Source: Podarcis filfolensis | Lineage: Eukaryota | DNA length: 64,000 bases | NCBI GenBank assembly: GCA_964270895.1 | Contig: OZ185436.1 | Direction: 5' to 3' (one strand) | In this document: piece by piece, positions 18,681 to 58,273 of the stretch | How positions within the stretch are numbered: position 1 is the first letter of the stretch | How the letters are laid out: every line of letters begins with the position of its first letter | Notes under the pieces: generated by a model | Told to the model about the DNA's origin: nothing | What the model saw: only the letters and a program-made list of their open reading frames with translations | Databases searched by the model: none | Translations under genes and position numbers: made by a program

Positions 18681-21666
18681 ATCCAGTTTGATTTCATTTT
18701 CTAATCTCTCAGAATCATGCAGCTATAGTTTTAACTTCATATTCACAGTGCAGCAGCCTCTGGAGGCAGAGCAACAGTAACTGTCAATTTAGACATCACA
18801 TCACATCCATTAGCACTGGCCATTTGGCCTGCTAGTCTGCCAACCGACTGAAATCATGCTTTTGTCAATTCAGACAATATGCAAAATTACAGTCTTCCTT
18901 TAACCATAGTTTGAACCATCTTCAGCCATTAGCTCTTCCTGCCGGGGGGGGGAGTCTGTTAGACTCCTGGTGACCCTGCTGCTTCACTGGGTCCAGCTAA
19001 ATCATCCTCAACTTCAGTGTCTTCCCCCTCTGACCTGCTGCACCTCTTGGGCCTTACATTAGCTACACATGGGGTGGATAACCTGTTCCCTTTCATTTGT
19101 TGTCAGGCTCCAACTTCCATTACCCACTATAGCCAATGGTCAGGGATGATGTCCAGCAACACCTGGAGAGTCACAGATTAGCAAGCCCTGAATTATGCAA
19201 TGATCACAAGTGCATGCCATGGTAATCAATGTTTGAAATTTGCCAGGAGCACTTTGCACCTGGTTATCGGCCACTTGCAGCCAAATGAAGATGCCCGGGC
19301 ACCAGGATGACACCTGACCAACTGGGGGTGCAAGCCTGGGGATCCTTGGATCTTGACTGTTTTCATACACTAGCAACACATCTAGCATTATTATATTGTA
19401 TTTTATCTGCACAAACATAATGAATTTCAGGAACCAAATAGCTGTATTGAAAAATATAACTTTTGAGGCATCTAGCCCCAAAATTGCAACTAGGCATTCT
19501 GTTTTGGAAACTGTTACCCTGGTTTAAGGAGCCATTTGGTGCCTAGCCATATCTGAGTTTTTAACACTGATGGTAATCCAACAAATCACAGTAAACCAAG
19601 AACATTCCTGGACCTGTCATTGCAGTTTGCTTGGTGCCAATGAATCACAATCCGTGATTCAGATCTAACACTAAGCAGGGGATCATAGTTTGCTTCCACC
19701 CAACACAAGCACAATGGAGAAAATTAGGCACAATTGGCTTGTGCACAGGTAGCCATAGTTTATAGCTTACAATGTGAAAACACAACCAGCATGTGTAGTT
19801 AGCAACATGCAAACAAAGAAGACAACAAAAACTTCAATGATTACTTCTGAGATGAAAGAACAGTTGCCTTGGCAAACATTCCGTATCCTCATAATAATTT
19901 ATCATCACTCAACCAAATCAATTTCCTTTACTGAAAGAAGTCACCAATTACTTCATTATATACATTTATGGAATTGGGTGGCTAAAGTATACTCTGCATT
20001 TCCTAAAAATATACTTCCATTAATGTTTTATTATTTAAAAACAACTGCCGGTTTAATAAAGCAAAAAGTAAAATTTAAACAATTAAACTAAAAAATAGCC
20101 TCACTAACCAACATGTAACTTCCATACAATCCAGTGGTTTTTAAATGACATCTACAGTTCTTCATAACAAAAGACTGGCTTTCAAAGCAAGATCATACAA
20201 TTTTCAACCTTAGCAGTAAAAATTTAAATAATATTATGCTCTGCATCTAAGCACAGGCCTGAATAGAATCTTATCAAAAGTGAAAACTCCATCAACAGAA
20301 TGCAGAACAGCCAAATCTATTACGTAATAAATGCAGCTTTATTCCTACTGTTGCACAATGTAATTAAATCCGGGGGGGGGGGGCAGTTGCTTCATACAAG
20401 TATGTCATTGAATAATTCTGTATCCATTCAGTAAAGGACTTATGTAGGTTACAACATGGCATTGTAGTTTATGTAGTTCACAAACTTCCAGCAGCAGAAG
20501 CCTCTTATGACTAAGACATCAAAATTTCTTACTGGTTCACAATTGCAACCCAGTTTTTAACTACTTAAATTGAATTGGAATATCTACAAGAAGTGCCTTT
20601 ACTAAGTTTATTTTCTGCTTACACATGGTTCACTTTGATTATGAGGTACAAATGCCAGAAGTCACAGTACATCATACAGAAGTGAAATGTAAGAGTTCAG
20701 AATGTCCAGCTATTTCAAAAAAGGTAAGTAGAATAACCATCCTAAATTGAATCCATTTACTGTAGTCTCTCCACTTGCCAAACTTATTACTAACAATATT
20801 CGTAAGCAAAACCCAACCAGATTATTTTTTTCAGATATACAAGGTATTTAACAGTACTGCCTGATGTTTTAGAGCACTAGCAAAGAGCTGCTAAAAGTCT
20901 TGACTCAGAATCTTTTCCTTTGTATAAAGTTTTTTTTAAGTGCTTTTTATGAGTTTCACAATAGAAAAGCAGACTGAGCCGCGACTTTATTTACTCTCCC
21001 ACTAGCTACTAGTTCCCTCCATTACAAGACTGGGGACCTCTCAAGTAGATCTCACAATGAAATTCCATTTTCAAAGGAGAATAAAAGGAAGGAAGGTGAT
21101 TTAGGCAGCAGTGCGTAATTAAGAGCTCAGTGATGCATATGTCGTCAGCAACTGTAAGGGGCTTCCACTTTCTGCACTCTTCCTTCCCTTCCCAGTCCTC
21201 AGAAGCCCCAATCTTTCAAGATACAATACTAATGGTAGAAGGGAATGGGAGCAAGGTGGGAAATTAAAGAAATATATTCCACTTCTTGGGAATGTTTAAG
21301 TACTGACATCCGCCATTTTCTGAGCAGAGGAGGAAGACATGTTGGAACAAAAACACAAAAGGGAGCAGCCATTTCCACTGTTCTATTCCAATCCTCAGAG
21401 TAACCAGTACTCCTGTTTCAACTACTGCCATATTCTCAAGTACTAGATAATTTTGTTGGTGCAGAGATGGGGAAGGGAAACAAGCAGCTGGTAGGGAAGG
21501 ATCCTTCAAGATCTTTTTCTAGATGCAACTTGCTACCACTCATAATAAGGCTTATTTCAGGCAACATATATGTATCACTTCCTCTAGCAGTGAAAAACAA
21601 AATACACTCATCCTTTGGGGAAAAGAGATAATGACTACTTTATCTCCCAAGAGCTATAATTCTTAC

Positions 21667-21773
21667 CGTATGTGAGGGATGCCAACTCCCCCTTGCAGAA
21701 TCTTGTATAGTTTGCTTTCATATAGCAGCTGGGGATGTCTGGCCTTCTGAGACTCCAACTTCACAGCTACTTC
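21667..21773 (-). CDS. CSNK1A1: Casein kinase 1 alpha, coding exon 2 (107 nt)
   Basis: CTGCAG|GAA acceptor; encodes [35 protein letters not shown](R); CG|GTAAGA donor, phase 2. Confidence 0.99.
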
Positions 21774-22419: not shown

Positions 22420-23480
22420 ACGACTAAAGCGGAGAGGCGGCGAAGGAGAAGTCAGAAACGGCCCTCGACATAAGGGCGAAGTGGGGGCGGCCAGGCTTTG
22501 TGGCAAGAGAGTCCGGGGAGCTTTTCCTGGCGCTTTCCCCCCGAGTTGATGTTCTGCCAGGCGGGGTGGGGGGAAAGGAGCGAGAAGCGAATCTCGGACG
22601 CGACGGGGGAAGAGAGGGGGGGGAGAAGAGGCCCGGGCGCCCGCCGGCCCTTACCTCCCCGTTGGTGATATTGATGGCCAAGTATATGTCCCCGAAGGAG
22701 CCCGAGCCGATCTTCCGCACCAGCTTGTATTTGCCCCCGACGATGAACTCGGCCTTGGAGCCGCTGCTGCTCGCCATGGCGACTGGGGGAGAGCGCGAGC
22801 GGGGAGGGGGGGAGGGGGGCTTGTTCACACGTCGAGAGCCCGACTGCCGAGTTTCTCCTCAAGGAGCCCCCGCTACGAAAAAGCCAGGATTTCGAGGGGT
22901 CTGTCGGTGGGAGGAAGAAGAAGAAGAGGGGGGAAGTGTATGGAGGACGGGGGGAGGGAGGACTCCGGTCCCCGAGGCTCCGTTCGCAACCAGGCCCCTT
23001 TGTAGGAAGCGGACGTCCCCCTCCACACGCTTCCGCGGCTGTCAGCGCTCTCTCTGCCCTCTCAGGAAAGGCAGCCCTGAGGGCTGGGAAGGGAGGGAGA
23101 AGCTCGAGCGGATCCGGCTGCCGCCGCCGCCGCCTGGCGCTTCATTCGGCCGCCGCCGCCATCTTGTCTGTCTCTCTCTTGCTCTCGCTCTCTTTCTCTC
23201 TCTCTTTCGCTGCTGATATCCAGGACACAAAATGCCTCCAGCCCGCGACCGACGCTTCTTCACCGCGCAGAGCACTCTGGGAAACAGGGGAGGAGAAGCG
23301 TCTCTCTGCGCATGCGTTTCCCGGAGGGAGGACAAGCAGGAAGTGTGCGTGATCTTAACGGCTTGGAAGGGATCGGCTGGTTTGGCGCATGCGCAGAAAG
23401 GCGCGGGTTGTGTTTGCCCCCCGCCTTAAGAGTAGACCCGCCCGTTAAGTACCGTAGGCAACTCTTTGAATTACGCAGTT
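22420..23480 (-). promoter_or_regulatory. CpG-island promoter / 5' leader of CSNK1A1
   Basis: GC/CpG-rich block spanning exon 1. NRF1-type sites TGCGCATGCG (23307-23316) and GCGCATGCGCA (23385-23395), ETS site CAGGAAGT (23337-23344), YY1-type AAGATGGCG on the minus strand (23157-23165), and CCCGCC GC boxes near 23418-23444. Confidence 0.9.
22655..22777 (-). CDS. CSNK1A1: Casein kinase 1 alpha, coding exon 1 (123 nt)
   Basis: Translates [41 protein letters not shown], the CK1-alpha N-terminus with the glycine-rich loop. ATG at 22777 has a GCCATGG context; the exon ends GAG|GTAAGG. Confidence 0.99.
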
Positions 23481-26452: not shown

Positions 26453-26592
26453 ATATAATTGTAGAGCTGGAAGGGATCATGAGGGTCATCTAGTCCAACC
26501 CCCTGCAATGCAGGAATCTTTTTGCCCAACGTGGGGCTCAAACCCACAACCCTGAGATTAAGAGTCTCATGTTCTACCAATTTACCTATCCG
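26453..26592 (-). mobile_element. tRNA-Lys(CTT)-derived SINE with CR1-type tail
   Basis: Head GGTAGAACATGAGACTCTTAATCTCAGGGTTGTGGGTTTGAGCCCCACGTTGGGC resembles tRNA-Lys-CTT and is fused to a GGACTAGATGACCC...CCCTTCCAGCTCTAC tail. Confidence 0.8.
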
Positions 26593-31393: not shown

Positions 31394-33341
31394 GTTCCTG
31401 CATGCCTTTATTTAAAAAGTAGAAGGTCTTCTATGGATGGCTGCTCCAACTTTTAATATCCTTGTTGTGTCTGATAATCTTAGTCATTTTAATGGGGGCT
31501 GGATGTTTTTAATGTATGAATTTCCACCCCTTGATTTTAATGGGGTTTTTTTTTTTTTTTTGGTGTTTTGTAGGTTGTACTGAGTTGCACTGGCAGGAAA
31601 AAGTAACTAATCAATATATTAAATAATAAAAATATAAAACATCTGTTCATGCATCTGTACTTTTTTTAAAATATCTTTATAAGCTTCCCACTTAAATTTA
31701 GGCTTCCTTCTTCTTTGTACCTTGTCAGGTACATCAAGGAGGCTCAGGCCACAATCCTAGCCACCCTTTCGTTGGAGTAAGAACACTGTGGGACTTACTC
31801 CCAAGTCGACGTGTTATAAAATTGCTTTGTTATAGAGATTAATGTTAAGTGCCCAACTTCAGCTTTTAAAAAATACATTGAGTTATATTTGGCACCTCAG
31901 ATTGCCTGCTATTTTGAGACTGCTTAATTCTCTCCTTGGAGACATAATGGGCTGAACGTGGAGTGGAATGGCGGAGTCCCCACCCCCACCCCTCAATTTC
32001 CTTAATACAGAACCACTTTATATTTCTTCGGCAGGTCTAGACCAATGTACTTTGATGGATCTTCATGTCCTTGATCAGCAACCTGCCTCTCTGGATTGCA
32101 TTGGCAATATGCATGCCATGCAGTTAACTTCTGCAGATGCATTCCTGCTGGGAGTTATCAAATCAGCTGTTCTAATTTAGCACTGCACTGTGATGCTGGT
32201 AAGGATTTTCCAGCCCAACTATCTTGGTTGTCGTTTTTTTATTTGTCCTTGCTTTTGCTCTCATCCTCCAGCAGTTTCTACCCTCCAGAGAACTGCTCGT
32301 TGCTGAGGAGGACTTGATATTTTTCATTTATTTGTACTCCCCCCTGCTTCACATGCGCGCTAACTGTCCCTGATCTCCCAAAAGAAAGCTGGCACAAGAA
32401 TACAGTTTTAAGAGCCACCAAAAATGGCTTTTCATCGATGGTTGTGATATCTCTGGTACATAATCTCCCATGATAGTTTTGTTGCTAAGTGAGGTGCTCT
32501 TTTGTCATAATGCCCTCTTGTTCTTCTTTGGATTGCAATGTGCAAATGGTTTATGGCTGAGAAGCACACAAAAGCACTTCTAGTTTTCTTTTATGGGTGC
32601 TTTTTATGAGAGCTGAGCCGTTTGGAAGCTTGAGTCATGCCTACTTGGAGAATCAGGAAAAACAGGTCTCCACCTAGGTGCCTGCAAGTAGACCATATAT
32701 GGGTATTAAAAAGCAAGCAGTGAACATTCTTGCTCCAGATTTACAATGTTGTATAATGCTGCCACCTAATGGATACCTGCATTATTGTTTGAATGATTTC
32801 TGTTGATACACGGATAAGCAAAGGGATATAATTGCCATGAAACCAACCCTCCTTACCCCAAGTGACTTAAATCCTTATCCGGGGACTGGGACTATAAAGA
32901 AATCACTTCAACTCAACGTTTTTGGAGTCAATGTTGCGATATTAGCGAGGTGAATCTGAGAATGAATTCAAAATCAGGTTGGCAGAATAGTTAAGCATTT
33001 GCGTGTGTGCTTTTCCCCCACGAATCAGCCCAGAGGGCAAAGATCCCACAGAATGTTGCTATGGATTGAGTGAGCACAACATATGTGGGGGAGTCCTTGA
33101 ACCACATTCTTGTTCACACATGGATCACAGTCACCTGGTTCAGCAGTAAAGCAGTATTACGCACGCATAACCTTATATTTACAATACTGAAACACTTCTC
33201 AGGAACTAGCTTCTTTAAAACATTTCCTCCTTCATGTATTCCCAGTACACCTCTGCACGTTCATGCAAACATTTGAAATAGCACTGAGATGATGTGGCCA
33301 TGATTCTGACTTGCTGTGGAAATGTGGATATAAATTATGCT

Positions 33342-33731: not shown

Positions 33732-36700
33732 ATTATGTTTCCTGAAGTGTTTATCAGTGAGCAGGTGCGTGACCATATTCCTATTTGCAGAATGCCATTG
33801 GGATGCTATACCTTGAGATGTAAGCAACGAAAGAGAAGTTACCATTCACTGATCTCGGCAAAATAACAATAATTGGCTATTACTTCCTACCTGTCTCACA
33901 GTGGATCTCTTTGTGTGTGTGTGTGCATTGTTGCATCCAGTCTGGCATTGCAGCAAACACAGGGCTCCTATGATTTGGTCCACCAACAGCAGAAGGAGTT
34001 GAATGGTGATTTCTCCTGTCTCTTAATTTTGGGGCCATCCTTGATGAGCAATATACAGCCAGGACCTTGCTCCCCCGCCCCCACGACCCACACAAAGAAA
34101 AAGGAAAGGAGCTACAGAAACCGCAAACTGGAGGGATGAGCCTGGAATTCCTGCCCTTGGAGCCTTTCTATGGCTCCCCTTTGGCATCGGTTTCCTATGT
34201 ATGGTGCACACATGTGACCAATGGACCTACCTTCAAGTCATGATTGGCTTCTGACTTGGAGGAGAGTGGTCATATATTGCTCCAGTTGATGCTGACTCCT
34301 GGAACTTTCCCATACAGAACCCCCAAGGAGATTTCCAAAGAACCTTAATGAAACACTGTCACCTCCGTGGGAATATGTTAGAGGTGGTGATGGTGAGGAT
34401 CTGTGTATCCCAAAATATTAGCCTAGAATCTGTCCTCCTAGGTGTTTGTTTTGAATAAAATCAGGAAAGTGATATATGGGTCACCCAATAAAACATCTTT
34501 CTTGCTTCCTTGGGAGCCTCAGTACACTCCCAGCTGCAATTCAATTATTTCTGCCCATTGACTGGGATTTTCCATGCTTTGATCATTCTGTCTATACAGC
34601 CAAATATGTCCAAACCTCTGCTGTATCGCTCAGAGGTCTGAAATGAGCCTAACAGAGCAAGTGGCCTACCATCTTTATAGTACAGCACTGGCAGCAGAAA
34701 AACTCGGAGAAGAGAAACACACAATAATTATGTCTGTTTAGCACCAACAAAAGAAGGGACTTTCAGGTTTGGGCTGGCTCTTTATTTCCTCTCTAGACCA
34801 TGGTGCTGCTTTGCAATGACAGATTCAAATCCCTGCTAAACCCTAAGAGCTGGGTCAATATATGGAATGGGTCCATATAGAATGGTAGAGTTGGAAGGGG
34901 AACCCTAGGGTCATCTAGTCCAACCTCAAAGGATGCAGAGCCATGGAATCTCAAATTGTATTTGTCATTCTCCCTTAAAGCAGCTCAAGTGTAACTAAAG
35001 GAAAAGCGGCATCTGTGTGCTTTCTTCATGTTTGTACAGTTTTGAGCATTTTTAAATAGTTTATTTCACTTCTTCTTCTCAAGGAAAAAAAAAGATTTGG
35101 CATCCAGCGCTGCTGTTCTGCTTGCACAAGAGACTTTCACTTGCACAGCAGAACTTCCCCTCTTCTTCACCGCAGTGTGTGCGCTCCCCGCCCCCAGAAC
35201 CACCAACCCCCTGGAACAGCTTTTGGGGACTTGCAAGGAGAGGAGAGGAAGGGGGAATCCAGTTGCATGAGCAGATCCCTGCTCACACAGCATTGGCTAC
35301 AACCCAGTATTTTTTAGGACAAGTGCCTTTCTGCTGTACAGGGTTGGTGTTCATAAAACCCTTTAAAATGCAGTAATACATCAAAAGTGGGGTGAACCGA
35401 AGCAACTTTGTTGCCTGTGCCCAAGTTAGAATACTTCCTCTCGATGTATGCTTCTGTTTTCTTTCCTGTGAAGGATGTGCATTTCCCATCACACACACAT
35501 CGCTCCTGTGTGTTTTTGTTCAAAGGTGAGAGACAGCTTTCCTCTTGCAGCAAAACCAGGTAGTCTACCTGAACCAACGCTCTTGTGTCCTAGGTTGACT
35601 ACTGTACATTATGTCTGCTCAGTGCTTTTTTTCTTAAAAAATGTTTAGGGGTACACTCATTCCATCTGAGACTCAGGAAACACCATGACAGGAAACGTGG
35701 CTGCCATCGGGGGTAGCAACGGAACTGATGATTCACCATGTTAGAGAAGAAACAAAATTTTAACTTTTTCAGTTTCTTCTCCCATTAGAGTCACAAAATA
35801 TTTAGGGGTATGCGTCCCCCGCAGAAAAAAAAGCATTGCGTCTCCTAGCCCAGCACCAAGAGCCCCCCCAGCTGCTGCCTTGCTATGGCCACCAAATTGT
35901 ACAGCATCTCTGCTTGGATTTCTAAGTTTCACATTTTGGAGCTGGCATAATAGGGTGAGATAATTATCAGTGCCACTGCAGGAACCTTAAAAAACACCAC
36001 CACCATGCACATGCTTTTGCTTGTGGGACCTTGTGTTTCCCATGCTGCTTGCAGCTGAGTAGTTCTCTATAAAATTAGCTCCGGATGACTGGATTCACAG
36101 ACTTTGCAGGATATTGCTTTCAGGACACCCATTCTGTGCCAGCATGCACAAGCAACCTCTCCACTGCCCCCTCCCCCTTGCCATGTCATTATGTCAGCAC
36201 TCTGCCCTTTATACAAGGGCACAGCCCCTGCTAATGGCTTCAATTCTGAAGTAGATCTCTGGCTTTCCTGTGACCTTGGCTGGTGCATTACTACAGGAGA
36301 CAGGAGCTTGTTTATGAGGCTACTTTAGAGCTGCCTGTTGTGCTTTCGGCTGCAGATGAAGAGAAGGGTTTATGCTGTTAGAAGTCAAATGGTACACAGT
36401 GAAATGTAGGGACAGAATTCAGAGATAGCTAAATAGTAAACGATGGACTTCAAAATTTGCAGATCTCCATATTTTTCAATGCAGTCCTGCAATCAACTAA
36501 TCATGTGTACAAAAAGGCAAAAGTTTGCACAATCTCCATATATTAGTGGAAATAAAATTATGTTTAGGGAAATGGCTTTCATCCAAAAATGTGACCATTA
36601 GGAGAAATGCGCACTAGAATGCTGACAAATTTTCATGAGGACATAAAAATAATAATCTCATACTGTTGTGGAAATGTGACAACTGGCTTTAAGATTGGAA

Positions 36701-38792: not shown

Positions 38793-41660
38793 TTATGGCA
38801 CTTCATCCGAAGCAAATCTAGGCAAAATGGGGTGTTCCTCTTCTTTTCCTTCACCTGTCTTCATAGCCATATTGAGCTTTTGCCAAAACAGTGCAACTTC
38901 CTTCTCATCCTGGGGCCATTTGAGATATGTCTTCTTCCTAATAAGTTTTCTCATTCTATGGTAGGGTGATAAGTACTCGCTGGGAATGTCCTCCAGAAAA
39001 ATGAGAATCAGGACATCCTTGTTTTCATCAAAAAGGCGAAAGCTGGCCACCTGGATCTCCTTGGAGCACCACTCACTTTCCAGGTAGTGGCGACTTATGA
39101 TACAAATGGTTTTCCTGCTCATGTAGATGTTGTTTACAATATTTTCCAGGATGGACCGTCCTGGCTCAAAGTCTCGGTGATGAAGACAGAGCTTCCAATG
39201 ATATTGGTTTTCAAGCACTGGCAGGAGGTCATTTATCACCCACTCTTCATTGTGTGTGTTGTAAGAAAGGAAAGCGTCGTAAGCATAACCCATGGCTCGC
39301 TCCTTCCTTTTTTCCCTCTTGTCAATGAAATATGCAAGTAGTAGGTGGTAACTGTAGATCATGTGCAACCTCCACTGATAAATGAAGCAGATGAGCATCA
39401 GTAAAATTGCTGCAGATGTGTTTGTGATATACAGGATAAACCCATAGTCAATTATGCAAGAAGACGTCTCAAAGGTCCACAATTTCTGCCCCTTTTGTGT
39501 TGAAGGGGAAGCACAGATGTACTGGTAGAAATGGAGCACCTGAGCTTTAGGATCCTTTAGTGACCAGTTGAGGAACATTTCATTACTACAGGAACAGGCA
39601 AACGTATTTTCCCTGAGATCTAGAAAACGAAGGGCAGGCAAAGCTCTTATTTGTTCTTTTGTGATAACGTCTATTTGGTTTTCAGCTCCTCTGAAAAGAG
39701 TTAACTTGGAAAGGTTGCCATGGGAAACAAAGCTGAGTGAATTTAGTCCGTTTTTATTGAGGTGCAGTTCCCTCAGGTTTGGTACAGGCCAGAAGAGCAT
39801 ATTGCTGACATTGTTAAGAGAATTATCACTCAAATCAAGCTCTTCAAGCGTAGGGGTATATTTAAAAGTCTTGGGATCCAATAAAGATATTGCCAAGTTG
39901 CCTGCGTGGATTTGCACAATGGACTCCAGTCCTTGTAAGAAGTTAACTGGAAAGTTTTCAAGTCCGTTATGACGTTGGCTGTTTATATTAAATTTGTTTA
40001 AGGACTTCAACAGTTTAAAGGGAGGATTGACAAGCATTTTGGAGGACTTGTAACTGATATAATTGTTGAAAAGGTCTAGGTCTACTAAAGAACTTAAACC
40101 TTGAAATAGCCCTTCCTGGAAAGTGTCTTTGGTGATCTTGTTGCTACCAAGAACAAGGCTGTGCAGGTTACTCAAACCTTCAAAGGCTCCAGGTTCTATA
40201 GCAGCAATCTGATTGTCTGCCAGGTTAAGAACCAGCAGAGAAGTAAGATTCTTAAAAACGTCTTTTTTTATCGAATCCAGTTTATTTTGCCTTAGTATCA
40301 GGGTTTCCAGATTCTTTAAGCTTCCTGGGAAAGGTTCGTTGATTTCTGTTAAAAGATTTATTTCAAGATTCAGTTCTTGCAAGCTGTGTAGGTCACCGAA
40401 GATATTTGAATGGACATGAGAGATACGGTTTCCAGTGGCATAGAGACTTTTCAAATTATTTAGATGGGCAAAGTCATCTGGAAGAATTCTATAGATCTTG
40501 TTAAAACTAAGATCCAGGCATTCTAATGATGCTATGTTAGAGGTAGCATTTGGCACCATAGTGAACTTGTTGTTTGCCAAAGAAAGAAGTTTCAAAGAAT
40601 GCAAGGACTGAAACAGTGTCATTGGCAGCACTTTCAGCTTGTTAAATGCCATATTCAGATACCTTAGATGTGTGCAGTTTTCAAAGGCTCCTTCATTAAC
40701 ACTTGTGAACGAATTGTGCTGTAAGTTAAGAGTCTCAACATTTCCATGCCTTAGACATACCTGCTCTATAAGTCCATCTGTTTCAGTCAGGTGTAACCAG
40801 TTTAGGTGGATAGCCTCTAGCCAGGTGCAATTGATCATTTGGAGCACCTCTGAGATAGCTGGTGGTTTCATAGCTATACCTCCTAAAAATAATGTCTTTA
40901 AGCCTTTTAGGAAGCAAGGGTCTTGTATCAACCATATAATGGAGATATTAGGGATAGAGAAGGATAAATCAAGTGAAGAAAGGCTTTGTAAAACTGAAGT
41001 TGTAACATCAATGAGAGAAATGGGGTTATGAGATGCATCCAGTTCACGAAGCTGCTCAGGTACACTAATGATCTGTTTGGTTGAGAAATTCTGCAGATCA
41101 TTGTCTTTGATGTGCAGTTCCTCCAAGGATGCCACTTTAAACACAGCATGCATAGCATTCATGGTATACAATCTGTTTGAAGATAAATCAATTACCTTTA
41201 ATTTCTCCAAATGGGCAAAGGCAGAAGGTTCAATCTTGAGTATTTGATTGCTGCCAAGCATCAAGACCGTGAGATTTGTAAGCCCATCAAACATGGAGCT
41301 GGAGAGAAGAGTCAGCCGGTTTGCAGTGAGGTTCAAGAATTCCAGGTAGCTTGTGTGTATGAAAGCACCTCCTTCGATGTGTTCTACTTTGTTCTGAGAA
41401 ATGTTCAGAACTCGAAGGTGACCCAAGTTTCTGAAGTCAGTCCTCCACAGACTTCTGATTTTATTCTCAGACAAGTCCAAAGCATCAACTTTGCCAGGTA
41501 GGTGGGTTGGGACATTTTTCAAGCTCCTGTTGTAGCACAGAACTTTTGTTCTGTTCCCCAAGACTTCATGCACCTCACATTTCTCAAATGAGTAAGGTGT
41601 CACCCTTTGGTCTTGGCTGAAGAAAAGGAGCAGTGTTGATACAAGCCTCAGAGAAAACAT
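38793..41660 (-). CDS. TLR22: Toll-like receptor, TLR11/13/21/22 family, best match TLR22; single coding exon, 955 aa
   Basis: Signal-peptide-like N-terminus, then YSFEKC..C LRRNT, many LxxLxLxxN repeats, LRRCT (NTFACSC...C...C), a hydrophobic TM segment (YGFILYITNTSAAILLMLICFIY) and a TIR domain with YDAFLSY, LCLHHRDFEPG and FW boxes. The TIR segments SYNTH and SRKTICIISRHYLESEWCSKEIQVASFRLFDENKDVLILIFLE resemble fish/amphibian TLR22 as I recall it. Family call is secure; the TLR22 versus TLR13/21 label is from memory, not a phylogeny. Confidence 0.9.
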   Translation of the reverse strand: MFSLRLVSTLLLFFSQDQRVTPYSFEKCEVHEVLGNRTKVLCYNRSLKNVPTHLPGKVDALDLSENKIRSLWRTDFRNLGHLRVLNISQNKVEHIEGGAFIHTSYLEFLNLTANRLTLLSSSMFDGLTNLTVLMLGSNQILKIEPSAFAHLEKLKVIDLSSNRLYTMNAMHAVFKVASLEELHIKDNDLQNFSTKQIISVPEQLRELDASHNPISLIDVTTSVLQSLSSLDLSFSIPNISIIWLIQDPCFLKGLKTLFLGGIAMKPPAISEVLQMINCTWLEAIHLNWLHLTETDGLIEQVCLRHGNVETLNLQHNSFTSVNEGAFENCTHLRYLNMAFNKLKVLPMTLFQSLHSLKLLSLANNKFTMVPNATSNIASLECLDLSFNKIYRILPDDFAHLNNLKSLYATGNRISHVHSNIFGDLHSLQELNLEINLLTEINEPFPGSLKNLETLILRQNKLDSIKKDVFKNLTSLLVLNLADNQIAAIEPGAFEGLSNLHSLVLGSNKITKDTFQEGLFQGLSSLVDLDLFNNYISYKSSKMLVNPPFKLLKSLNKFNINSQRHNGLENFPVNFLQGLESIVQIHAGNLAISLLDPKTFKYTPTLEELDLSDNSLNNVSNMLFWPVPNLRELHLNKNGLNSLSFVSHGNLSKLTLFRGAENQIDVITKEQIRALPALRFLDLRENTFACSCSNEMFLNWSLKDPKAQVLHFYQYICASPSTQKGQKLWTFETSSCIIDYGFILYITNTSAAILLMLICFIYQWRLHMIYSYHLLLAYFIDKREKRKERAMGYAYDAFLSYNTHNEEWVINDLLPVLENQYHWKLCLHHRDFEPGRSILENIVNNIYMSRKTICIISRHYLESEWCSKEIQVASFRLFDENKDVLILIFLEDIPSEYLSPYHRMRKLIRKKTYLKWPQDEKEVALFWQKLNMAMKTGEGKEEEHPILPRFASDEVP

Positions 41661-41896
41661 CCTCCTTGTTGTGTAACTGCTCCCAGTGAATTTGAGAGCA
41701 AAATGGGTAAGTTGACACTGTGAAATATGTGCATTGCTGCATCGGAAATTCAGCTACTTACAAAATGAGAAGAAATGTTTCAAATGCGGAACATGAAAGT
41801 GCTGGCTCACTGGAGATGTGTACAGGAAGAAAACGGAACTGGTATGGCCAACTAGTTTCCAAGCCTTACTATAATTCAATCGAAGCATGTACAACT

Positions 41897-42025
41897 GAAT
41901 CATAGAATCATAGAGTTGGAAGGGACAATGAGGATCATCTAGTCCAACCCCCTGCAGTGCAGGAATCTTTTGCCCAATGTGGGGTTCAAACCACAACCCT
42001 GACATTAAGAGTCTCATGCTCTAAC
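41897..42025 (-). mobile_element. tRNA-Lys(CTT)-derived SINE with CR1-type (ATTCTATG)n tail
   Basis: Same family as 26453-26592; about 240 bp upstream of the TLR ATG. Confidence 0.8.
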
Positions 42026-42416
42026 AATTATTGTTGTTTCCTTGTTTGCCAGAGCAATTTGTTTTACACGTTTCTTAGTTGCTTGATGCTGTCATATGTT
42101 GATGTGTGGTGCGATCCTATGCATGCCTTCTCAAATTCAAGTTCTTGAGTTCAGTGGGGCTTACCTCCAAGCAAGTGTGTATAGCATTCTAACCCAAGCG
42201 AAACATTTGGTTTAAGGTGCACCTTCCCAGCAAGAGCCAATAATTTGTATGTACGGCAGGGACACAGCCTCTTAGGACACACGTAAACATCTTTGAGTTG
42301 CATCAGCACAGGTGAGGGAATGTTTCCAGCAGAGCTTGTGCTCAAACAGGCTCAGCAAGATTTTCTCTCTCTCCTTCATAATGCGTTCTTTGCAAGCCTT
42401 CCATTCCAGACTTTTC

Positions 42417-42426
42417 AGCCAATCAG
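42417..42426 (+). promoter_or_regulatory. CCAAT box (AGCCAATCAG)
   Basis: Full NF-Y-type context, lying between oppositely oriented consensus splice donors upstream of the TLR. Confidence 0.4.
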
Positions 42427-42677
42427 GAAAAACAGAGATCAGATACCGCAAACTGAGAGCGACTCCCAGAGACTGGCGTCTTAGCAAATGTGGAGCAAAA
42501 CATGGATGGTTAAACAGTGGAGATAACAGAAAAGAAGAGCACAGCTAAGGTAAGCATCTGCCTGTATATGTGTTTTCAAAGCTTTGGCTGTAAATAAAAT
42601 GCTCGAAAGGCGCTTCCAGACTGATGCTTTTTTGGGGTGGGATTCAGTCCATAGCTGTAACCCTTCCCTTTTTTTGC

Positions 42678-42687
42678 GGGAAATTCC
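42678..42687 (+). promoter_or_regulatory. Canonical NF-kB site GGGAAATTCC about 1 kb upstream of the TLR start codon
   Basis: Exact match to the GGGRNWYYCC consensus; near-palindromic GGGAAATTCCC. Function is not demonstrated. Confidence 0.55.
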
Positions 42688-44945
42688 CTTATTCCAGTGC
42701 CGTTTCCTGCTGCTTCCCGCTGCTATCCCGGATTGTTAGATATCCCATAGACTGTCCCCGGGACAGGTGAGGCTGCTGATCCCTTAGTTTCGAGACTGCT
42801 GATCCCTTATTTTCAAATCTGAAGTTGACAGCTATGATTCCGTCACATACCAGCAAACTGAGGCTGTGTAGTAAAGTTTGACTGGGAGCTTTTGCACAAC
42901 AAACCTGTTTCCCCCTAAAGATGGGAGTTTTTGCAATAAGGAAAGTGATGGGAAGATGCACTCAAAAGTGTGGGATGGCATCTAACTTCCCTGCAAACCA
43001 ATCAGAATGAATGCTCAATAAGCAGGTTATCTGGAACTGACCCAAATTTGTAACACATAGTGATGGAAATATTGACAGCTGCACAAATTAGAGGTAGGGG
43101 GTGAAATAACGTTTGCCAGGATCCAAGTTGAAAACAGGGATGTTCTATTAGTTCATTGCATTTCTTAAAACTTATATAATCATTGAAGTTTGCCCCAACC
43201 ACATTTTACCTTTTGCGGAATAGTCCTCTACGGTTGATTCAACACCAGTGGTGTATCATCCAGACATAAGGCCATGTTGTGTATTCTGCAAAATGTTCTT
43301 GACACCATTATTGGTGGGTTTGTTCTGCTTCAGTTTGGTCTGTGATACTTTTGTGATGCTATCACACGATTGCTGTGTGAAGCAGCTATTGTACAACAAA
43401 ACTGGGACGAAAATAAGCCAAAACGTTTGTAGTACAGGACTTCAGCAGGAAGTTATGGGATATGTACTGACTGGAAATGAAGCAGTGTGACTTCCCTAAA
43501 ACATTTGCACGTGCAAGTAGTATGGAAAACAGGATTGCCTCATGAATGCACATTAAAAAGGACTCGGGACCATAACAGTTGAGGCAAGGGAGGCAGTCTT
43601 GCTGTGGTGGAAGAATGTATGCTTCAAGCAAAGGATGAGTAGATGCTTCCCGCCCCCGTCCCCCTGGAATCGGGAGTGTGGAGCTGCCAGAACACTTCCC
43701 ACTCGCACATCCTGAATCAAGACCAAAGAAGAGGGGTGTCTCCAGACTATCAAACTTTTGCAGGAGGGATTCAAGTGCATACTGGAACTAGGTTTGCACA
43801 TTTAAAGTGCTCTGTCTCCCTAACGCAACAAATCCACTTTTCAAAAGAGCTGGGGGAAAGTGGAGAGGAAATACATTGAAAAGTGTGCGATGAACTAATG
43901 GCAGATAAGACATGTAAACACCCCACGGCACATGTGAATGAGGACGAATGCAGAATGGATGTTCGTTGTCATATTACCACACTTTAAGCAAATTGGAACG
44001 GATGCTCAATAAAGGCTGGATATAATCTAACCACCACTCCATGTAAGCTTAGTGCAAGTAAATCAGGATGAAGCTCAGTAAATAGGTTGGCTGGTGGTGG
44101 CATTAAAGCAAAATGCTGCTGAAGGAGGGAGCCTAGCCTTCATTTTTAATAGGCTACATGAACATTCACCGTCTTAGGCAGCATGGTGAAGAGCGCATTT
44201 AGTCTCCAAAGACTAAAGATGTTCAACCATCACTTGGGGTGGGGGGAAACCTTTCAACATTAATGAGCACAGCTGGGTAGTTATGCCACCTATTTCTGCC
44301 GATGTCACTACAAAATAAATAGGCAATGAACTGGCCCAGCCACATACCATGCAGCAGTCACTATCCAAACACATCAGCTGGGGAGGGGACAAGACATTGC
44401 CAGTAACAAGATGTTGCCAGTTGAACAATGGGGAAATGTGATATATTTCCAAGAGAAGCATTACTTTCGGGGGCTATCTAATTTTAATGTATAAAATAAT
44501 TACCCGAATCTTTGCAGCAAATGAGAGAGAATGCTTCATGTGCAGGGTAAGCATTAAATTGGCACTGGCCTAGGGAATGGTCTGACGGCACGGGATGCCA
44601 TTCTTCTACCACTGAAACTAAGCTTCAGTGGCAGGCAGGGATGAAACATGACCACACATTTCACAGCAGGGATGATGGTGAAGTTTCCAAGAGTGCTATT
44701 TGCTGATTTCTTGCATATCAAATTACCAACATAGGAAGCTGCCTCCTATCAAGACAGACCATTGGTACATCAGTCACAGTACTTTCTAAACTAGCTGGTG
44801 GAGACTGTCTGCGGTTTCAGGCAGGGTTTTCCCCAGCCCTATCTTGGGACACCAGGGTTTGAACCCAGGACCTTTGTTTGTTTGTTTGTTTGTTTGTTTT
44901 ACAAAGTTGTTATTGTAATTCACCAGATCTTAACCTATTACAGTA

Positions 44946-45160
44946 CAGTGGTACCTCGGGTTAAGAACTTAATTCGTTCTGGAGGTCCGTTCTTAAACTG
45001 AAACTGTTCTTAACCTGAAGCACCACTTTAGGTAATGCGGCCTCCTGCTGCCGCCGCACAATTTCTGTTCTCATCCTGAAGCAAAGTTCTTAACCCGAGG
45101 TACTATTTCTGGGTTAGCAGAGTCTGTAACCTGGAGCGTCTGTAACCCGAGGCACCACTG
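44946..45160. mobile_element. Tc1/mariner (Tigger-like) MITE inserted in an L1 relic
   Basis: TIRs CAGTGGTACCTCGGGTTA ... TAACCCGAGGCACCACTG, TA TSD. Confidence 0.9.
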
Positions 45161-45550
45161 TATTTGTAAGAATGGATTCCAAATATCATTGAATTTGTCC
45201 ATGGCAAGTCTGTGTTTATATGCAAGTTGTTTGTATGTTGTGAGTTTTATAGGTCTTCCATTCAATCGTAGAAGGGAGCCGCATTTTTATTTTTCCAATT
45301 CACCAATTTACCACCCTTTGCTGTGGTAAGGGCATGAAGAGTCCACTCGTATTGTCCTTTTGTAAGGTTCCATGTGCTGGGTATATAATTCAAGAGGATA
45401 CTTTGCTCTGTAAATGTAAGGTTGTTCTGTACAGTTCGGTTATTAGTTTCAGTTACCTTCTGCCAAAAATCTTTCAATATAGGACAATGAAAAAACATAT
45501 GTTTTAGAGAAGCATTATCCCTGTTACATCTCCAGCAGTTAGATACCTTA

Positions 45551-45895
45551 GGTAAAGGTAAAGGTACCCCTGCCCGTACGGGCCAGTCGTGTCCGACTCT
45601 GGGGTTGTGCGCCCATCTCGCTTAAGAGGCCAGCGCTGTGCGAAGACACTTCCGGGTCACGTGGCCAGCGTGACAAGCTGCATCTGGCGAGCCAGCGCAG
45701 CACACAGAAACGCCGTTTACCTTCCCGCTAGTAAGCGGTCCCTATTTATCTACTTGCACCCAGGGGTGCTTTCGAACTGCTAGGTTGGCAGGCGCTGGGA
45801 CCGAGCAACGGGAGCGCACCCCGCCGCGGGGATTCGAACCACCGATCGGCAAGTCCTAGGCGCTGAGGTTTTACCCACAGCGCCACCCGCGTCCC
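45551..45895 (-). mobile_element. Sauria SINE, young CpG-rich copy
   Basis: Full-length, (ACCTTT)n-type tail; 12-bp TSD ttagatacctta (45539-45550 and 45896-45907). Confidence 0.93.
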
Positions 45896-46428
45896 TTAGA
45901 TACCTTAGATAGCCCTTATTTAAACAACCGTAATGGGGTCCAGTATATTCTAAATATTATTTTTTGTTGTATGAGCCTCAATTTAAGGTCCAAAGACACC
46001 CTTGTTATATCAGTTAAAACAGTTTCCCACTGTGTGGTGGAAACTGAGATCTCTAGTTCTTTATTCCAATCCTTTTTTGTGGAATATAAGATTTTCTCAG
46101 AAAGAAACTCACCAGACAAGCTGACCAGAGGAGGAGGAGCTTTCATGAGTGTGCATGGCTAAGTATTACACTGCTGCTTTTGTTTTGAAAAATTCCAAAA
46201 CCCCTTTTATTATGACCATCCAAAAGCAGTGAGCAAGCTTTTGAATACGATATACTGGTAAGTTTTTGAGTTGGGTGTAAATGGTGTAGGGAGGATAGAG
46301 CGGTGAGGGAAAGGTTGCCTTGGTATTGAAGCCATACTGTCTGCCTTGGTCAAAAGTTCATTTTTATTGTATTGTCTTAGAAGAGGCATGACTATGGAGG
46401 TTGTCAGGAAGGATGCCTGCACTTTAGG

Positions 46429-46611
46429 CAGTGGCGTAGCGTGGGTTGTCAGCACCCGGGGCAAGGCAAGTAATTTGCGCCTCCTAACCCGTGGTAGGCT
46501 ACTCTGCCAGGTAGGGGCAGAGAGCTGCGAGTGCGAGCGCGAGCGCGCCCCCCTCCAGATGTTGCGCCCGGTGCGGCAAGCCCCCCCTGCACCCCCCATG
46601 CTACGCTACTG
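46429..46611. mobile_element. hAT-type MITE
   Basis: TIRs CAGTGGCGTAGCGTGGG ... CCCATGCTACGCTACTG; exact 8-bp TSD actttagg. Confidence 0.9.
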
Positions 46612-48211
46612 ACTTTAGGATTTTCTCACAGTGATAGTGCATAAAGGGGAGATCACTTGGGAACCATACTGCTCCTACTGTGAGCACTCTGGAGTCAGAA
46701 CAGAGTATAAATCTAATACTTTTTTATTTTTTAGTGGTAAAGCTATTACAAGTAGAGGAGGAATGTTAGATGCCAGATATGTGGAAATTAATGTTGTTAG
46801 AAAGTTAGTACTTCTTTAAAGAAGTACCAACTTTTGCATAAAGAAACATGGAGTTGGAACACTAATCAGGGGCAGGACTTGGGATAAGGCATGGGCTGCA
46901 CAAGCAATTTGCTGAGCTTCAGCTACCGGTATATACAGTACCATGCAATTGTTTGCTGATGCAGAGTGCAAACATACCTCAACTATTGCGCAAAATGTAA
47001 GGAGTGCTGTTGTAGAGATCAAAGTACAAGGGTGAATGTATGTCAGTTTGGAGATGGCAGCAGATATCATTGAATGATCTATGTACGGTGCTACATTTCC
47101 TTATTTACTTGCAAACAAGTGTCCTGCAAATAAGCCAAGCGGGTTGGATTTGTTCCTTTCTTTACAGTAAATTTGCTTTACCCAACACATCCAAAGTACT
47201 TATACACCAATCTGTGTCTCACATATAGAATAGTGTGTGTCATTCTTTTGAAGATCTCCATAAAAGTATTGAAATAGTTCACATCCTGGGGTATCTTGAT
47301 TCCACCCTACCAGAAAGCACCAACAATCTTCTAGATAATCTGAGTATTTATATCCTATAATCTTTCTTGGATAGCTGAGAAAATTGTTCTCTGCTTTCCT
47401 GATGTCGTTATATATGTTGAGTAATGTGAATGATATTGTGCCATTTGCAATTAAGCATCATTCTTTCTAGCAGTGGCTGGAAGCAAGTGATTCAACAGGC
47501 GTGGTTGTTGGGTAGTGAGTGGGTAGCATAGAAACCCCATTATGCTTTTTTCCTTTGTGCATTCACCACAGAAAGCCGTGGAAAGTGTAGAAAGGAAAAA
47601 AGTGTATTTGGGGTACAAATCAACACACTAGTGGGACAGGAGGTGGGATGGCATGGTGGGGTCTGTGTAAAGCCCCAGATCAAAAAGTAAGGCATTTTAT
47701 TAAATAGACAGGAATCATGTTCACACATTTTAGCTGACAATATCCAACTTGGTACTTAGCATTATTATCCTGGCTTTTAAATATAAAAAAGATCATCACA
47801 TGCAACAAGGAAATGTTGCATGGGTGGAATACTGCAGTGTTGAAATCTGTTCATCGTGTTTATATGACACTGCACTTTGGCTTAGTGGTTAAAGCGTGTC
47901 GCTACACCTAGAGTTAATTGATGGAATATTTGAGTCATCATTTTCCACATGCCCAGCTCTAGCTGTTTTACAGTTTAGAGTGTTTTCATGAACAAAAAGG
48001 AGCAGCGGAATTGTTATTTTGGATGTGCAAAGGATACCTGTTATTACTGCCGTTCTAAGCTGTCAAAGAATGCAAACTCCCAAGTTTTGCAGAAGGAATT
48101 TATCGATCTTTTCTTTTTTGCAAAACTTTATGAAGTTGAGAGAAAGTGGGGGAAAGCTCATTCTCAATAGAATATTATTTCTTCTGTCAAAATATAACCT
48201 GTCTGGATGAC

Positions 48212-48220
48212 CACACACAG

Positions 48221-48259
<39 letters not shown>
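48212..48259. repeat. Compound (CA)n(GA)n microsatellite
   Basis: Direct reading; a (TAC)n tract follows at about 48298-48330. Confidence 0.95.
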
Positions 48260-48334
48260 TATCTACCAATATACTTCAGGGCCTCATTTTTTCCATTTAC
48301 TACTACTACTGCTATTGCTACTACTACTAAAGTT

Positions 48335-48440
48335 GTCAGCAGGTGAGCCTCCCTAGGGAGGGCATTCCGTACACAGGGTACCACAACTGAAAAAGCCCCA
48401 TCTGTAGTCAACGCACACCTAAATTCAAATGGTGAGGGGA
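48335..48440 (-). mobile_element. L2-like LINE fragment
   Basis: Minus-strand AFSVVVPCVRNALPRE resembles the L2 ORF2 RAFSVAAP.LWN.LP motif; a similar piece lies at about 17610-17720. Confidence 0.5.
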
Positions 48441-50147
48441 TCCAGAGGAGAGCCCTCAGATGAATTAAGCCCTCTTCATGAGGAGACCCTCCCCTGAAGA
48501 GGACATCAGTGAGGGCAGAACCCCAAAGAGACCAGAGGCGCAGCAGGACTTTGTTTAGGTTGCTCAGCCTCCCCACCTAACAGCTGGCATGCACGGTAGC
48601 GCAGCAACAGCAGCCATTTTCCCACTTGTCCTCCAGCGTCCAGCTGGCCCCGAGCTTTAATTCTGGTTGTGAATGTTTATGAATACAGTGTTTTGGGCAT
48701 GGATTGAAGAGAGAGTGGCAGAGAGGGTGTTTAGAGGTTGCTCCTCACTTGATGCAATTTCACTTATGTGTGTGGGGCCCCAGAACTTAACGCCTGTATA
48801 TCCAATTCTCCATTTCATGCAGAATGAAAAAAGCAATGTCCTCTATCCAACCAGGTCTGGATTGGAACCAGGGCTGTGAAGATGAAAACCTCTACATCTT
48901 TTTACCACTGTATCTTAACTGTCCAGTCTAGGCATCTTTTAGGGCTTTGTCTGTGGCTTAAAATGATTTCATAATATGAAAGCATGAATTAAAAGAAGGA
49001 ACCCGTTTAACAATAGAAGCACCTGCATCCTTTGCAATGCACAGTTTGTGGTAAGAAGGGGAAGAGAAATAGCTAAGTAATACTTTCATTGTTTAGCATT
49101 TTTAAAAACACATGCTTAAGAGGACGCTGAGAGCTCAGCGGAAGTTGCTAAAGAATAGAATTCTTGCTTAAAATAATGAGAGAGAAGCAAAACTTTCAAA
49201 TGAAAAGGGAAGTGGGGAAAAGATTTATGCTTCCAGGTATTAATCATCAAGCTCTGCCTACAATTCCCAGGCTTTTTGCTCATCATTAATCTCAGACTGG
49301 TTCTAATTTAACTGGACGGGCTGTCTTCCTGCCTAATAATGCAAGGCTCCATGGACCTTTCCAGGTGATCATCATTTTGCAGTGCAATGAATGTGCACTT
49401 GTTACAGCGCATATAAAAATGTCTTTCCCCCAACTAGCACCTGAGTTGTGGGGGAAATCAGGGTTTTCCAGCACTGAAACTGCTTTGCTTAAGAAACAGC
49501 ATTTTTCACCCCAGCAAGTGCATCTACTGTGACAAATGTTACACTGATGTTGAAGACTGCTTGTGCGTGGTGTTTATACCATCACAGACAGTAAGCAGTA
49601 AAATGCCCCTCATCTATGCCTGTCCCATCTTGTTTTCTTTTTCTTTAAAAAAGGGAATTCGAAAAAAACTTTAAATGCCATTTACTATTTCTACTGACAG
49701 TACAATCCTATGCCTTATCTTCACATTTGACTCAGGAGCCAGTCAGAATAAAACACCAAGAACAGATATCTCAGATTTTATATATTAAGAGACATGGAGC
49801 AACACCACTCCCTGTACCCACAGATCTGTGGGCATTCCAATGTATAGGTAGGGCCCTTGGCTGGAGTGGAGAGACTAGCTGTGGATTTTACATGCAGATC
49901 TGCCTACTGGTCTATGGAATAGGCTTGTTTATTCTCACTTGAATGGCACTTCCTCCCTCTCCGCCCCACCCTCCCGCTCTGGATCTGGCTTTGTCAAAGA
50001 GGTTTTCGTCGAATCGATAAAATGTCCAGGAAAAACCAGAGTATGACAAATAGGGTGAGGTGATTTTTTTAAAAGAGAAAAGCTGGTCAACAACTTTGCC
50101 CGGATTTTCACTTTGGGGAATATGGCAACCCTGACTGTGGGAGGGGA

Positions 50148-50306
50148 CAGTGGCGTAGCGTGGGTTGTCAGCACCCGGGGCAAGGCAAGTAATTTGCGCC
50201 CCCTAACCTGTGGATTTGCGCCCCCTAACCCGTGGATTTGCCCTAACCCCCAGGTGTTGCGCCCGGTGCGCCCGGCCCCCCCTGCACCCCCCACGCTACG
50301 CCACTG
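50148..50306. mobile_element. hAT-type MITE (same family as 46429-46611)
   Basis: Same TIRs; exact 8-bp TSD ggagggga. Confidence 0.9.
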
Positions 50307-51962: not shown

Positions 51963-52190
51963 AAATTGTAGCGTTGCAGGGGACCCAAGCGTCATCTAGT
52001 CCAACCCCATGCAATGCAGGAATCTCAGCTAAAGCATCCATGACAGATTGTTATCCAGAATCCACCCCACCCCCCGGGAGTCTGTTCCACTGTCAAACAG
52101 TTCTTCCTGATGTTTAGTCAGAATCTGCTTTCTTGTAACTTGAAGCCATTGGTTCGGATCCTAGCCTCTGGAGCAGGAGAAAACAAGGAC
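51963..52190 (-). mobile_element. CR1 LINE 3' fragment
   Basis: gtcatctagtccaacccc tail and tctgttccactgtcaaac/ttgtaacttgaagccattgg body. Confidence 0.7.
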
Positions 52191-52695: not shown

Positions 52696-53003
52696 TAAAG
52701 GTAAAGGTAAAGGGACCCCTGACCATTAGGTCCAGTCATGACTGACTCTGGGGTTGCGGCACTCGTCTCGCTTTATTGGCCGAGGGAACTGGCGTACAGC
52801 TTCCGGGTCATGTGGCCAGCATGACTAAGCCGCTTCTGGTGAACCAGAGCAGCGCACGGAAACACTGTTTACCTTCCCGCCGGAGCGGTACCTATTTATC
52901 TACTTGCACTGTGTGCTTTCGAAGTGCTAGGTTGGCTGGAGCTGGGACTGAACAACAGGAGCTCACTTCGTCGTGGGGATTCGAACCAGTGACCTTCTGA
53001 TTG
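52696..53003 (-). mobile_element. Sauria SINE, 5'-truncated
   Basis: ggtaaaggtaaagggacccctgacc tail and conserved body up to the B-box. Confidence 0.88.
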
Positions 53004-58019: not shown

Positions 58020-58273
58020 GTGGCATCTTTCCGCAGGGCCTGCAAGACAGAGCTGTTCTGCCTGGCCTCTGGTTTAGACTCAGTCTGACCCTTATGTTTC
58101 CATCCCTTTATGGTTTTGATTTATGGGCTACTATTAAAATGAGGCTGCTTTTTAAATTGTATTTTAACCCGTATTTTAATTAACTCCCCCCCCATTATGT
58201 TTTATTGTAATTTTATTGGTGTTAGCCACCCTGAGCCCAGTTCTGGCCGGGAAGGGCGGGGTATAAATAAAAA

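Follow-up and report, generated by a model that had tools for sequence, protein, structure and literature searches.

We analysed a stretch of 64,000 nucleotides from contig OZ185436.1 of the Podarcis filfolensis assembly GCA_964270895.1 (hereafter the window), which carries, on the same strand as the kinase gene CSNK1A1 and upstream of it, a gene for a Toll-like receptor (TLR) that an initial annotation of the same DNA had assigned to TLR22. The gene is a single open reading frame (ORF) that opens with an ATG, contains no internal stop codon, and is the sole ORF of at least 150 amino acids between 37.5 and 43 kb. In Pfam searches the 955-residue product matched LRR_8 in 10 stretches (1.5e-79) and the TIR domain once (6.9e-25). 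Motif counts resolved the ectodomain into an LRRNT, about 26 leucine-rich repeats (LRRs) and an LRRCT with conserved cysteines, with 14 N-glycosylation sequons, and only one segment of the protein, residues 740-762, is strongly hydrophobic. In an alignment of 28 sequences P833 and G834 do not vary, and P833 and W822 are constant throughout the TLR22 clade described below. The ORF is thus a complete type I membrane TLR with signal peptide, LRR ring, one transmembrane helix, and a TIR domain bearing Boxes 1 to 3. The claim of a complete, uninterrupted receptor of 955 amino acids with the BB-loop motif RDFEPG was borne out by the ORF list, the translation, Pfam and the box alignment. Coordinates of all features are collected in the table.

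Features of the window, with the evidence for each (positions in nucleotides of the window)
Feature	Position	Strand	Evidence and remarks
TLR22 coding sequence	38793..41660	-	single exon, 955 codons + stop; ORF, translation, Pfam LRR and TIR, TLR22 clade
Predicted signal peptide, ~residues 1-21	41598..41660	-	hydrophobic N-terminus MFSLRLVSTLLLFF; short low-confidence helix 2-14 in the model; no dedicated cleavage-site tool
LRR ectodomain, residues 22-735	39456..41597	-	Pfam, sequence match to 4z0c, motif counts, AlphaFold2 model, Foldseek
Transmembrane helix, ~residues 740-762	39375..39443	-	strongest hydrophobic 19-mers at 739-750; continuous model helix 739-787
TIR domain, residues 793-931	38868..39284	-	Pfam 6.9e-25; box alignment; dN/dS 0.10 against Elgaria
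TIR Box 1, YDAFLSY, residues 794-800	39261-39281	-	box alignment
TIR Box 2/BB loop, LCLHHRDFEPG, residues 824-834		-	box alignment
BB-loop motif RDFEPG, residues 829-834	39159..39176	-	proline conserved throughout the TLR22 clade
TIR Box 3, FW, residues 925-926	38883-38888	-	box alignment
CSNK1A1 exon 1, coding part	22655..22777	-	41-residue peptide MASSSG...NITNGE, then GT donor; 100% amino acid identity to the alligator exon
CSNK1A1 exon 2, coding	21666..21773	-	100% amino acid identity to alligator L003:22348-22455
Further CSNK1A1 kinase exons	~7.4-7.6 kb and 5.6-5.85 kb		peptide search
Mapped first coding exon of ARHGEF37-type gene	44531..44546	+	MLHVQ + GT donor; inferred from the Lacerta agilis model; divergent from the TLR
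Conserved non-coding block 1	32538..32793		blastn; same order in Elgaria, Pantherophis (colubrid), Emydura and Alligator
Conserved non-coding block 2	36060..36334		blastn; common to Elgaria, Gopherus and Emydura

The start codon used here is the conserved one, since the Lacerta, P. raffonei and Elgaria proteins share the same beginning, and an in-frame stop lies 31 codons 5' of it. The RefSeq model for Zootoca vivipara (979 amino acids) has a 24-residue N-terminal extension (positions 10001-10072 of that locus, L009). Because the matching codons of the window hold no ATG and the in-frame stop intervenes upstream, this extension probably either arose in annotation or is peculiar to Zootoca.

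We searched the protein against solved structures and against a public protein collection. Among solved structures, the ectodomain aligned end to end with mouse TLR13 (4z0c; residues 25-723 against 3-699, 1e-60) and the other TLRs matched chiefly through the TIR domain, a pattern that assigns the protein to the TLR13 subfamily. The exact sequence is absent from the public protein collection; its cluster at 90% identity consists of proteins from P. muralis, P. raffonei (98.3% identical), P. lilfordi, Lacerta agilis and Zootoca, named either "TLR13" or "uncharacterized". The top match of a word-index protein search was a P. muralis protein (97% identity) entitled "LOW QUALITY PROTEIN: toll-like receptor 13", and orthologues followed from other squamates (64-71%), turtles (61-63%), alligator (62%), lungfish (51%) and a frog (48%). 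Proteins already named TLR22 matched at 49% in the basking shark and about 40% in teleosts, Salmo TLR22a among them. A second tier, at 29-35%, was made up of other squamate "TLR13" proteins, elephant TLR13 (34%) and teleost TLR21; identity to TLR21 was 31-32%, as compared with 40-49% to named TLR22.

Two maximum likelihood trees were used to assign the gene, one of 42 sequences (LG+C20+F+G4) and one of 55 (LG+G4) to which TLR21 of birds, crocodilians, turtles, geckos and Anolis had been added. In both, the lizard protein fell in one clade with every sequence named TLR22 (basking shark, Salmo TLR22a, Oreochromis, Aulostomus, Boleophthalmus TLR22b), with a support of 100 in the Shimodaira-Hasegawa-like approximate likelihood ratio test (SH-aLRT). 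Branching within this clade tracks the species tree through shark and lungfish, frog, alligator with turtles, and squamates (each SH-aLRT 99-100), which indicates orthology rather than a lineage-specific duplicate. TLR13 forms a separate clade (SH-aLRT 99-100), in which elephant TLR13 is joined by one frog gene and by a squamate gene other than ours (Sceloporus, P0090). TLR21 forms a third, with teleost, coelacanth, shark, alligator and bird members and a further squamate gene (Elgaria P0063, Lacerta agilis P0123, Gekko, Anolis). In approximately unbiased (AU) tests, topologies holding the clade of the lizard gene together with TLR13 (log-likelihood difference 142, p-AU 7e-63) or with TLR21 (difference 134, p-AU 3e-20) were both rejected. 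The initial annotation had named this very grouping as the test of its reading, and its assignment to TLR22 rather than TLR13 or TLR21 held.

TLR22 and TLR23 are known to cluster together, TLR23 being exclusive to fish (PMC8882821). Our trees, built without any sequence of that name, place an unnamed teleost subclade (P0048-P0057) within teleost TLR22 and the lizard protein outside all teleost subclades. We also considered a fourth sauropsid paralogue, since a search with TLR21 returned two tiers of identity. The 55-sequence tree rejected it: the TLR21 clade spans all sauropsid groups, geckos, Anolis and birds included, with no extra paralogue, and the tiers reflect differences in rate and composition, the TLR21 proteins of neognath birds, alligator and Pelodiscus having much longer branches and a deviant amino acid composition relative to those of palaeognaths, turtles and squamates.

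Taken with the synteny and selection results given below, these analyses make it very probable that the wall-lizard ORF is orthologous to TLR22, a receptor of the TLR13 subfamily (in the broad TLR11 family) that dates from before the divergence of jawed vertebrates, has been lost in birds and mammals, and is retained in this lizard under constraint and in a conserved sauropsid slot.

That slot is defined by two neighbours. The stop codon of the TLR lies 16,016 bp from the ATG of CSNK1A1 on the same strand, in line with the distance of about 16 kb first estimated. CSNK1A1 exons were sought singly, as peptides read from the window, without a joined spliced model; a run of 204 N occupies positions 3373-3576 within the region of this gene. 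In the alligator, exons 1 and 2 of CSNK1A1, identical in amino acid sequence to those of the window, start 8.9 kb past the TLR22 stop on the same strand. The flanks compared in Elgaria, tortoise, Emydura and the snake extend 10 kb and end before CSNK1A1, so that collinearity with the window or with the alligator stands in for the gene itself. By blastn the Elgaria flanks are collinear with the window over 31.8-49.3 kb, those of the snake Pantherophis are likewise collinear with it, and the turtle loci (Gopherus, Emydura) follow the alligator interval to 1.7 kb short of CSNK1A1 exon 1, where the compared DNA ends. The alligator arrangement and these four sets of flanks sustain the proposal that the CSNK1A1 neighbourhood serves as a synteny anchor and that the gene is not a lineage-specific stray.

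The neighbour on the other side was identified through Lacerta agilis, where a gene on the opposite strand encodes a 730-residue protein with RhoGEF, BAR and SH3 domains, the architecture of ARHGEF37, and has its first coding exon 2.9 kb upstream of the TLR ATG. This Lacerta locus (L007:572-10000) is collinear with positions 41661-51989 of the window at 89-95% DNA identity. In the window itself, a direct search for ARHGEF37 exons with Pfam matched nothing in the ten longest ORFs of 27-64 kb and produced a single chance DUF match in the 134 plus-strand stop-free stretches of at least 38 amino acids in 44.3-64 kb. The ARHGEF37-type neighbour is therefore placed from the orthologous Lacerta annotation. 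The order in lacertids is accordingly ARHGEF37-like and TLR22 transcribed divergently, followed by CSNK1A1 in the same direction as TLR22, and the sauropsid order of a divergent ARHGEF37-type gene, TLR22 and CSNK1A1 is a conserved slot. The interval between TLR22 and CSNK1A1 contains two conserved non-coding blocks, of which the first shows 67-76% identity over 140-1000 nt; neither gave a match in Rfam, and they could be regulatory elements of CSNK1A1 or of TLR22. None of the papers searched names TLR22 together with CSNK1A1. At the tilapia locus (Oreochromis niloticus, L006) a CNKSR-type gene lies upstream of TLR22 and a second TIR-domain gene follows on the same strand. The tilapia gene spans 11.7 kb and hence has introns, unlike the tetrapod and shark genes.

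Several other features of the window were noted. Rfam returned two weak tRNA matches, at 55258-55329 and 26531-26588 (both on the minus strand; 39 and 32.5 bits), which we rejected as tRNA genes since ARAGORN finds none. The latter lies inside a dispersed repeat (26432-26582) that is also found just upstream of Lacerta TLR22, and an adjoining repeat in the Lacerta flank has copies in the window at 13260-13453, 45550-45750 and 52696-52900; the tRNA-like matches are probably the heads of short interspersed nuclear elements. Long ORFs of up to 183 amino acids are numerous on either strand of the region 54970-60500, which gave no match in Pfam and has a somewhat raised G+C content (0.49 at 56-58 kb).

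The gene is intact well beyond this one assembly. All ten non-teleost orthologues read in codons (shark, frog, alligator, a tortoise, Elgaria and four lacertids including the window among them) are uninterrupted single-exon ORFs of 2805-2940 nt, and the Emydura and Pantherophis loci likewise translate to full-length proteins. Six lacertid sequences keep the frame of 955 codons open, namely those of the window, P. raffonei, P. lilfordi, P. muralis v2, Lacerta agilis and Zootoca. Ratios of nonsynonymous to synonymous substitution (dN/dS, by Nei-Gojobori) between the window and Elgaria are 0.30 for the whole gene (dS 0.52, not saturated), 0.36 for the ectodomain and 0.10 for the TIR domain, and 0.19-0.23 for the comparisons with tortoise and alligator. 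Pairwise values among the window, P. raffonei, Lacerta agilis and Zootoca are 0.25-0.38, indicating that constraint continues on recent lacertid branches. TLR22 of the window is under purifying selection.

Reptilian TLR22 is already known, and the gene described here is not a discovery: the catalogue of Liu et al. (2019, Genome Biol Evol; PMC6946030) means that a lizard TLR22 is not new. Its Table 1 counts 11 TLR22 sequences from reptiles and sets their reference length at 952 amino acids, in keeping with the remark of the initial annotation that TLR22-like genes had been reported in some reptiles. Its Table S2 provides TLR22 accessions for Pogona, Protobothrops, Python, Pelodiscus and Gavialis and a dash for Anolis carolinensis, Gekko japonicus and Alligator sinensis. 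This is the same gene as ours, those genera or their relatives being the nearest neighbours of the lizard protein in our searches, although the set of Liu et al. is without lacertids and the searchable text of that paper contains no synteny with CSNK1A1 or ARHGEF37. A review of sea turtles likewise lists TLR22 in Chelonia (PMC9951749), and loss of TLR22 in birds and mammals has been stated in a preprint (bioRxiv 10.64898/2026.03.23.713620) and in PMC12179096.

The names under which these genes are deposited are a separate difficulty. The expectation that squamate TLR22 is often auto-annotated as "TLR13" proved correct, P. muralis and other lacertid records carrying that name, which RefSeq applies to the gene in five lacertids. 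In fact three phylogenetically distinct squamate genes (TLR22, P0002; TLR21, P0063; TLR13, P0090; with their relatives) are all named "toll-like receptor 13" at source, and bird TLR21 is also widely named "TLR13". With one RefSeq name for three squamate genes, repertoire counts made by name mislead. A related case is the gene that Dolby et al. (2020; PMC7058155) called "TLR21-like". That paper describes a second "TLR13"-labelled gene present in lizards, snakes, turtles and crocodilians only, which is not in the gecko and has an LRR gene model ("LINGO1") in its place in Anolis. It shares with our gene the taxon distribution, the "TLR13" label and a conserved syntenic slot. Dolby et al. read it as a new, sauropsid-only sister of TLR21, whereas the gene of the window has orthologues in fish, shark, lungfish and frog. 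From taxon distribution and trees, "TLR21-like" is most likely TLR22, and this presumably went unrecognised because Dolby et al. sampled tetrapods only. Our results suggest that both "TLR21-like" and the three-way use of "TLR13" are naming artefacts.

The distribution of TLR22 within squamates appears patchy. In the word-index protein search the TLR22 clade gained no gecko, Anolis, bird or mammal member. No TLR22-clade protein was recovered for 12 squamate species (two Gekko species, Paroedura, Heteronotia, Euleptes, Tiliqua, Lerista, Hemicordylus, Rhineura, two Anolis species and Sceloporus), although the same database yielded TLR21 for all of them. On this indirect evidence, and on the absence from Anolis and Gekko scored by Liu et al., we tentatively suggest that TLR22 might have been lost independently at least four times in squamates (Gekkota, skinks with cordylids, the amphisbaenian Rhineura, pleurodont iguanians), in addition to its loss in birds and mammals, and that the interval between ARHGEF37 and CSNK1A1 might have been the site of every loss, although we regard this as rather less probable than otherwise. 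On such a reading lacertids, anguimorphs, agamids, teiids and snakes may retain TLR22 under constraint.

An AlphaFold2 model built on 28 orthologues (mean predicted local distance difference test score 83, ectodomain mostly above 85) consists of a regular LRR solenoid, a long transmembrane helix (739-787) and an alpha/beta TIR domain. Its unbroken, regular ladder of beta-strands over residues 28-718 predicts a single-domain LRR ring of about 26 repeats with no Z-loop insertion. Compared with the Protein Data Bank by Foldseek, the best match was the mouse TLR13 ectodomain 4z0c, with a template modelling (TM) score of 0.82 (target-normalised), a root-mean-square deviation of 3.7 A and 27% identity, while TLR3 ectodomains scored 0.54-0.63. 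As the modelled fold is TLR13-like rather than TLR3-like, binding of double-stranded RNA (dsRNA) is not readable from it.

What is known of TLR22 function comes from fish. The claim that teleost TLR22 is a sensor of long dsRNA stands in part: responsiveness to dsRNA or its analogue poly(I:C) has been reported for TLR22 of several fish species, but the picture of a surface receptor signalling through TICAM-1 is contested (PMC6978911). Fugu TLR22 was placed at the cell surface with TICAM-1 signalling (Matsuo et al. 2008, as cited in PMC6978911), whereas both grass-carp receptors, TLR22a and TLR22b, reside in lysosomes, recruit MyD88 and bind poly(I:C) at pH 5, with no binding at pH 7.4 (PMC6978911). 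The authors of the latter study linked the BB-loop proline to MyD88. This proline is present in every TLR22 we examined and absent from lungfish TLR3 (RDFESG), and its conservation would fit recruitment of MyD88 slightly better than that of TICAM-1. If the lizard receptor works as its fish orthologues do, ligand binding would dimerise the ectodomain and bring the TIR domains together, the paired TIR domains would recruit an adaptor, and activation of IRF3/7 and NF-kB would then induce type I interferon. By analogy with fish we lean towards dsRNA as the ligand of lizard TLR22, with only modest confidence because the ectodomain is about 40% identical to that of fish, has evolved faster than the TIR domain and has a TLR13-like fold.

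Teleost TLR22 belongs to the orthologous clade and is alike in length, single-domain LRR ectodomain, TIR boxes and BB-loop proline, but it differs at about 40% identity, often exists as several paralogues, in some cases has introns, and has other neighbours. TLR3, the presumed functional analogue as a dsRNA sensor, belongs to a different subfamily and has a more open horseshoe and a BB loop without the proline. TLR21, the CpG-DNA sensor of chicken type, is of the same subfamily, with similar length and TIR boxes, but constitutes a separate clade that includes the geckos, Anolis and birds in which we found no TLR22, and it frequently carries L or V at the position of the BB-loop P of TLR22.

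A number of observations weigh against the view of the gene as a conserved orthologue with the function of its fish counterparts. There is no CSNK1A1 within 10 kb of TLR22 in the frog or shark loci, and no synteny with the fish gene came to light: in tilapia TLR22 is flanked by a CNKSR-type gene and another TIR gene. The ligands of reptilian TLR21 and TLR22 are described as uncharacterised (PMC9951749), in agreement with the initial annotation that function in squamates is largely uncharacterised. The fish data themselves conflict on compartment and adaptor (PMC6978911), and the teleost paralogues CiTLR22a and CiTLR22b can signal oppositely. Finally, the ectodomain is only about 40% identical to that of teleost TLR22, and as modelled it is nearer to TLR13, a single-stranded RNA binder, than to TLR3, the canonical binder of dsRNA.

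Taken at face value, the RefSeq name would make the gene a true TLR13 orthologue and a sensor of bacterial 23S rRNA, as in the mouse; TLR13 binds a 13-nt single-stranded segment of that RNA. The name is used at source in Podarcis, Lacerta and Zootoca, and mouse TLR13 is both the end-to-end sequence match of the ectodomain and its top structural match. That likeness reflects the common subfamily, there being no TLR22 structure with which to compare. Elephant TLR13 sits in its own clade, squamates own a TLR13 there (the Sceloporus gene), identity to it is lower than to named TLR22, and the cost of 142 log-likelihood units for a forced union refutes orthology; we consider this explanation practically excluded. 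The taxon distribution given by Dolby et al. (2020) would also allow the gene to be a TLR21 duplicate that arose on the reptile stem, is confined to sauropsids and would sense CpG DNA. Orthologues in frog, lungfish, shark and teleosts show that it is not sauropsid-specific, the TLR21 clade has squamate, turtle, crocodilian and bird members of its own in species-tree order, and the union with TLR21 was rejected in the AU test, so such an origin is extremely unlikely.

Orthology to TLR22 being accepted, the ORF could still belong to a silent or decaying gene heading for the loss seen in Anolis and geckos. Absence in Anolis carolinensis and Gekko japonicus (Liu et al. 2019), the want of an orthologue for skinks, a cordylid, Rhineura and Sceloporus, whose TLR21 did appear, and the LOW QUALITY flag on the first P. 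muralis RefSeq model all point that way. However, the frame is open in six lacertid sequences, the TIR signature residues are all intact, and dN/dS on the short lacertid branches and in the TIR domain is far from neutral, which leaves decay a very improbable account. A more serious alternative is that the gene is a functional TLR22 orthologue whose ligand in amniotes has shifted away from dsRNA. The ectodomain has evolved faster than the TIR domain (0.36 as against 0.10), it has diverged to about 40% identity with teleosts, its ring is TLR13-like and not TLR3-like, and its relatives TLR13 and TLR21 read single-stranded RNA and CpG DNA. Nothing positive speaks for another ligand, though, and several fish TLR22 respond to dsRNA or poly(I:C) (PMC6978911). 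We therefore think a shift unlikely, though it deserves to be taken seriously.

The contributions of this work are a formal orthology test for a lacertid, the sauropsid order of ARHGEF37-type gene, TLR22 and CSNK1A1 with its two non-coding markers, and a proposed clean-up of names; its practical value lies in tidying up nomenclature rather than in discovery. The gene order and the two markers give a precise address at which relics of TLR22 can be sought in birds, mammals, Anolis and geckos. With the fish data at odds, the receptor of a lizard or a turtle could usefully serve as a third point of comparison. If repeated loss in squamates is true, it would amount to a natural knock-out series with a fixed address for relics, and would raise the question of what makes this sensor dispensable.

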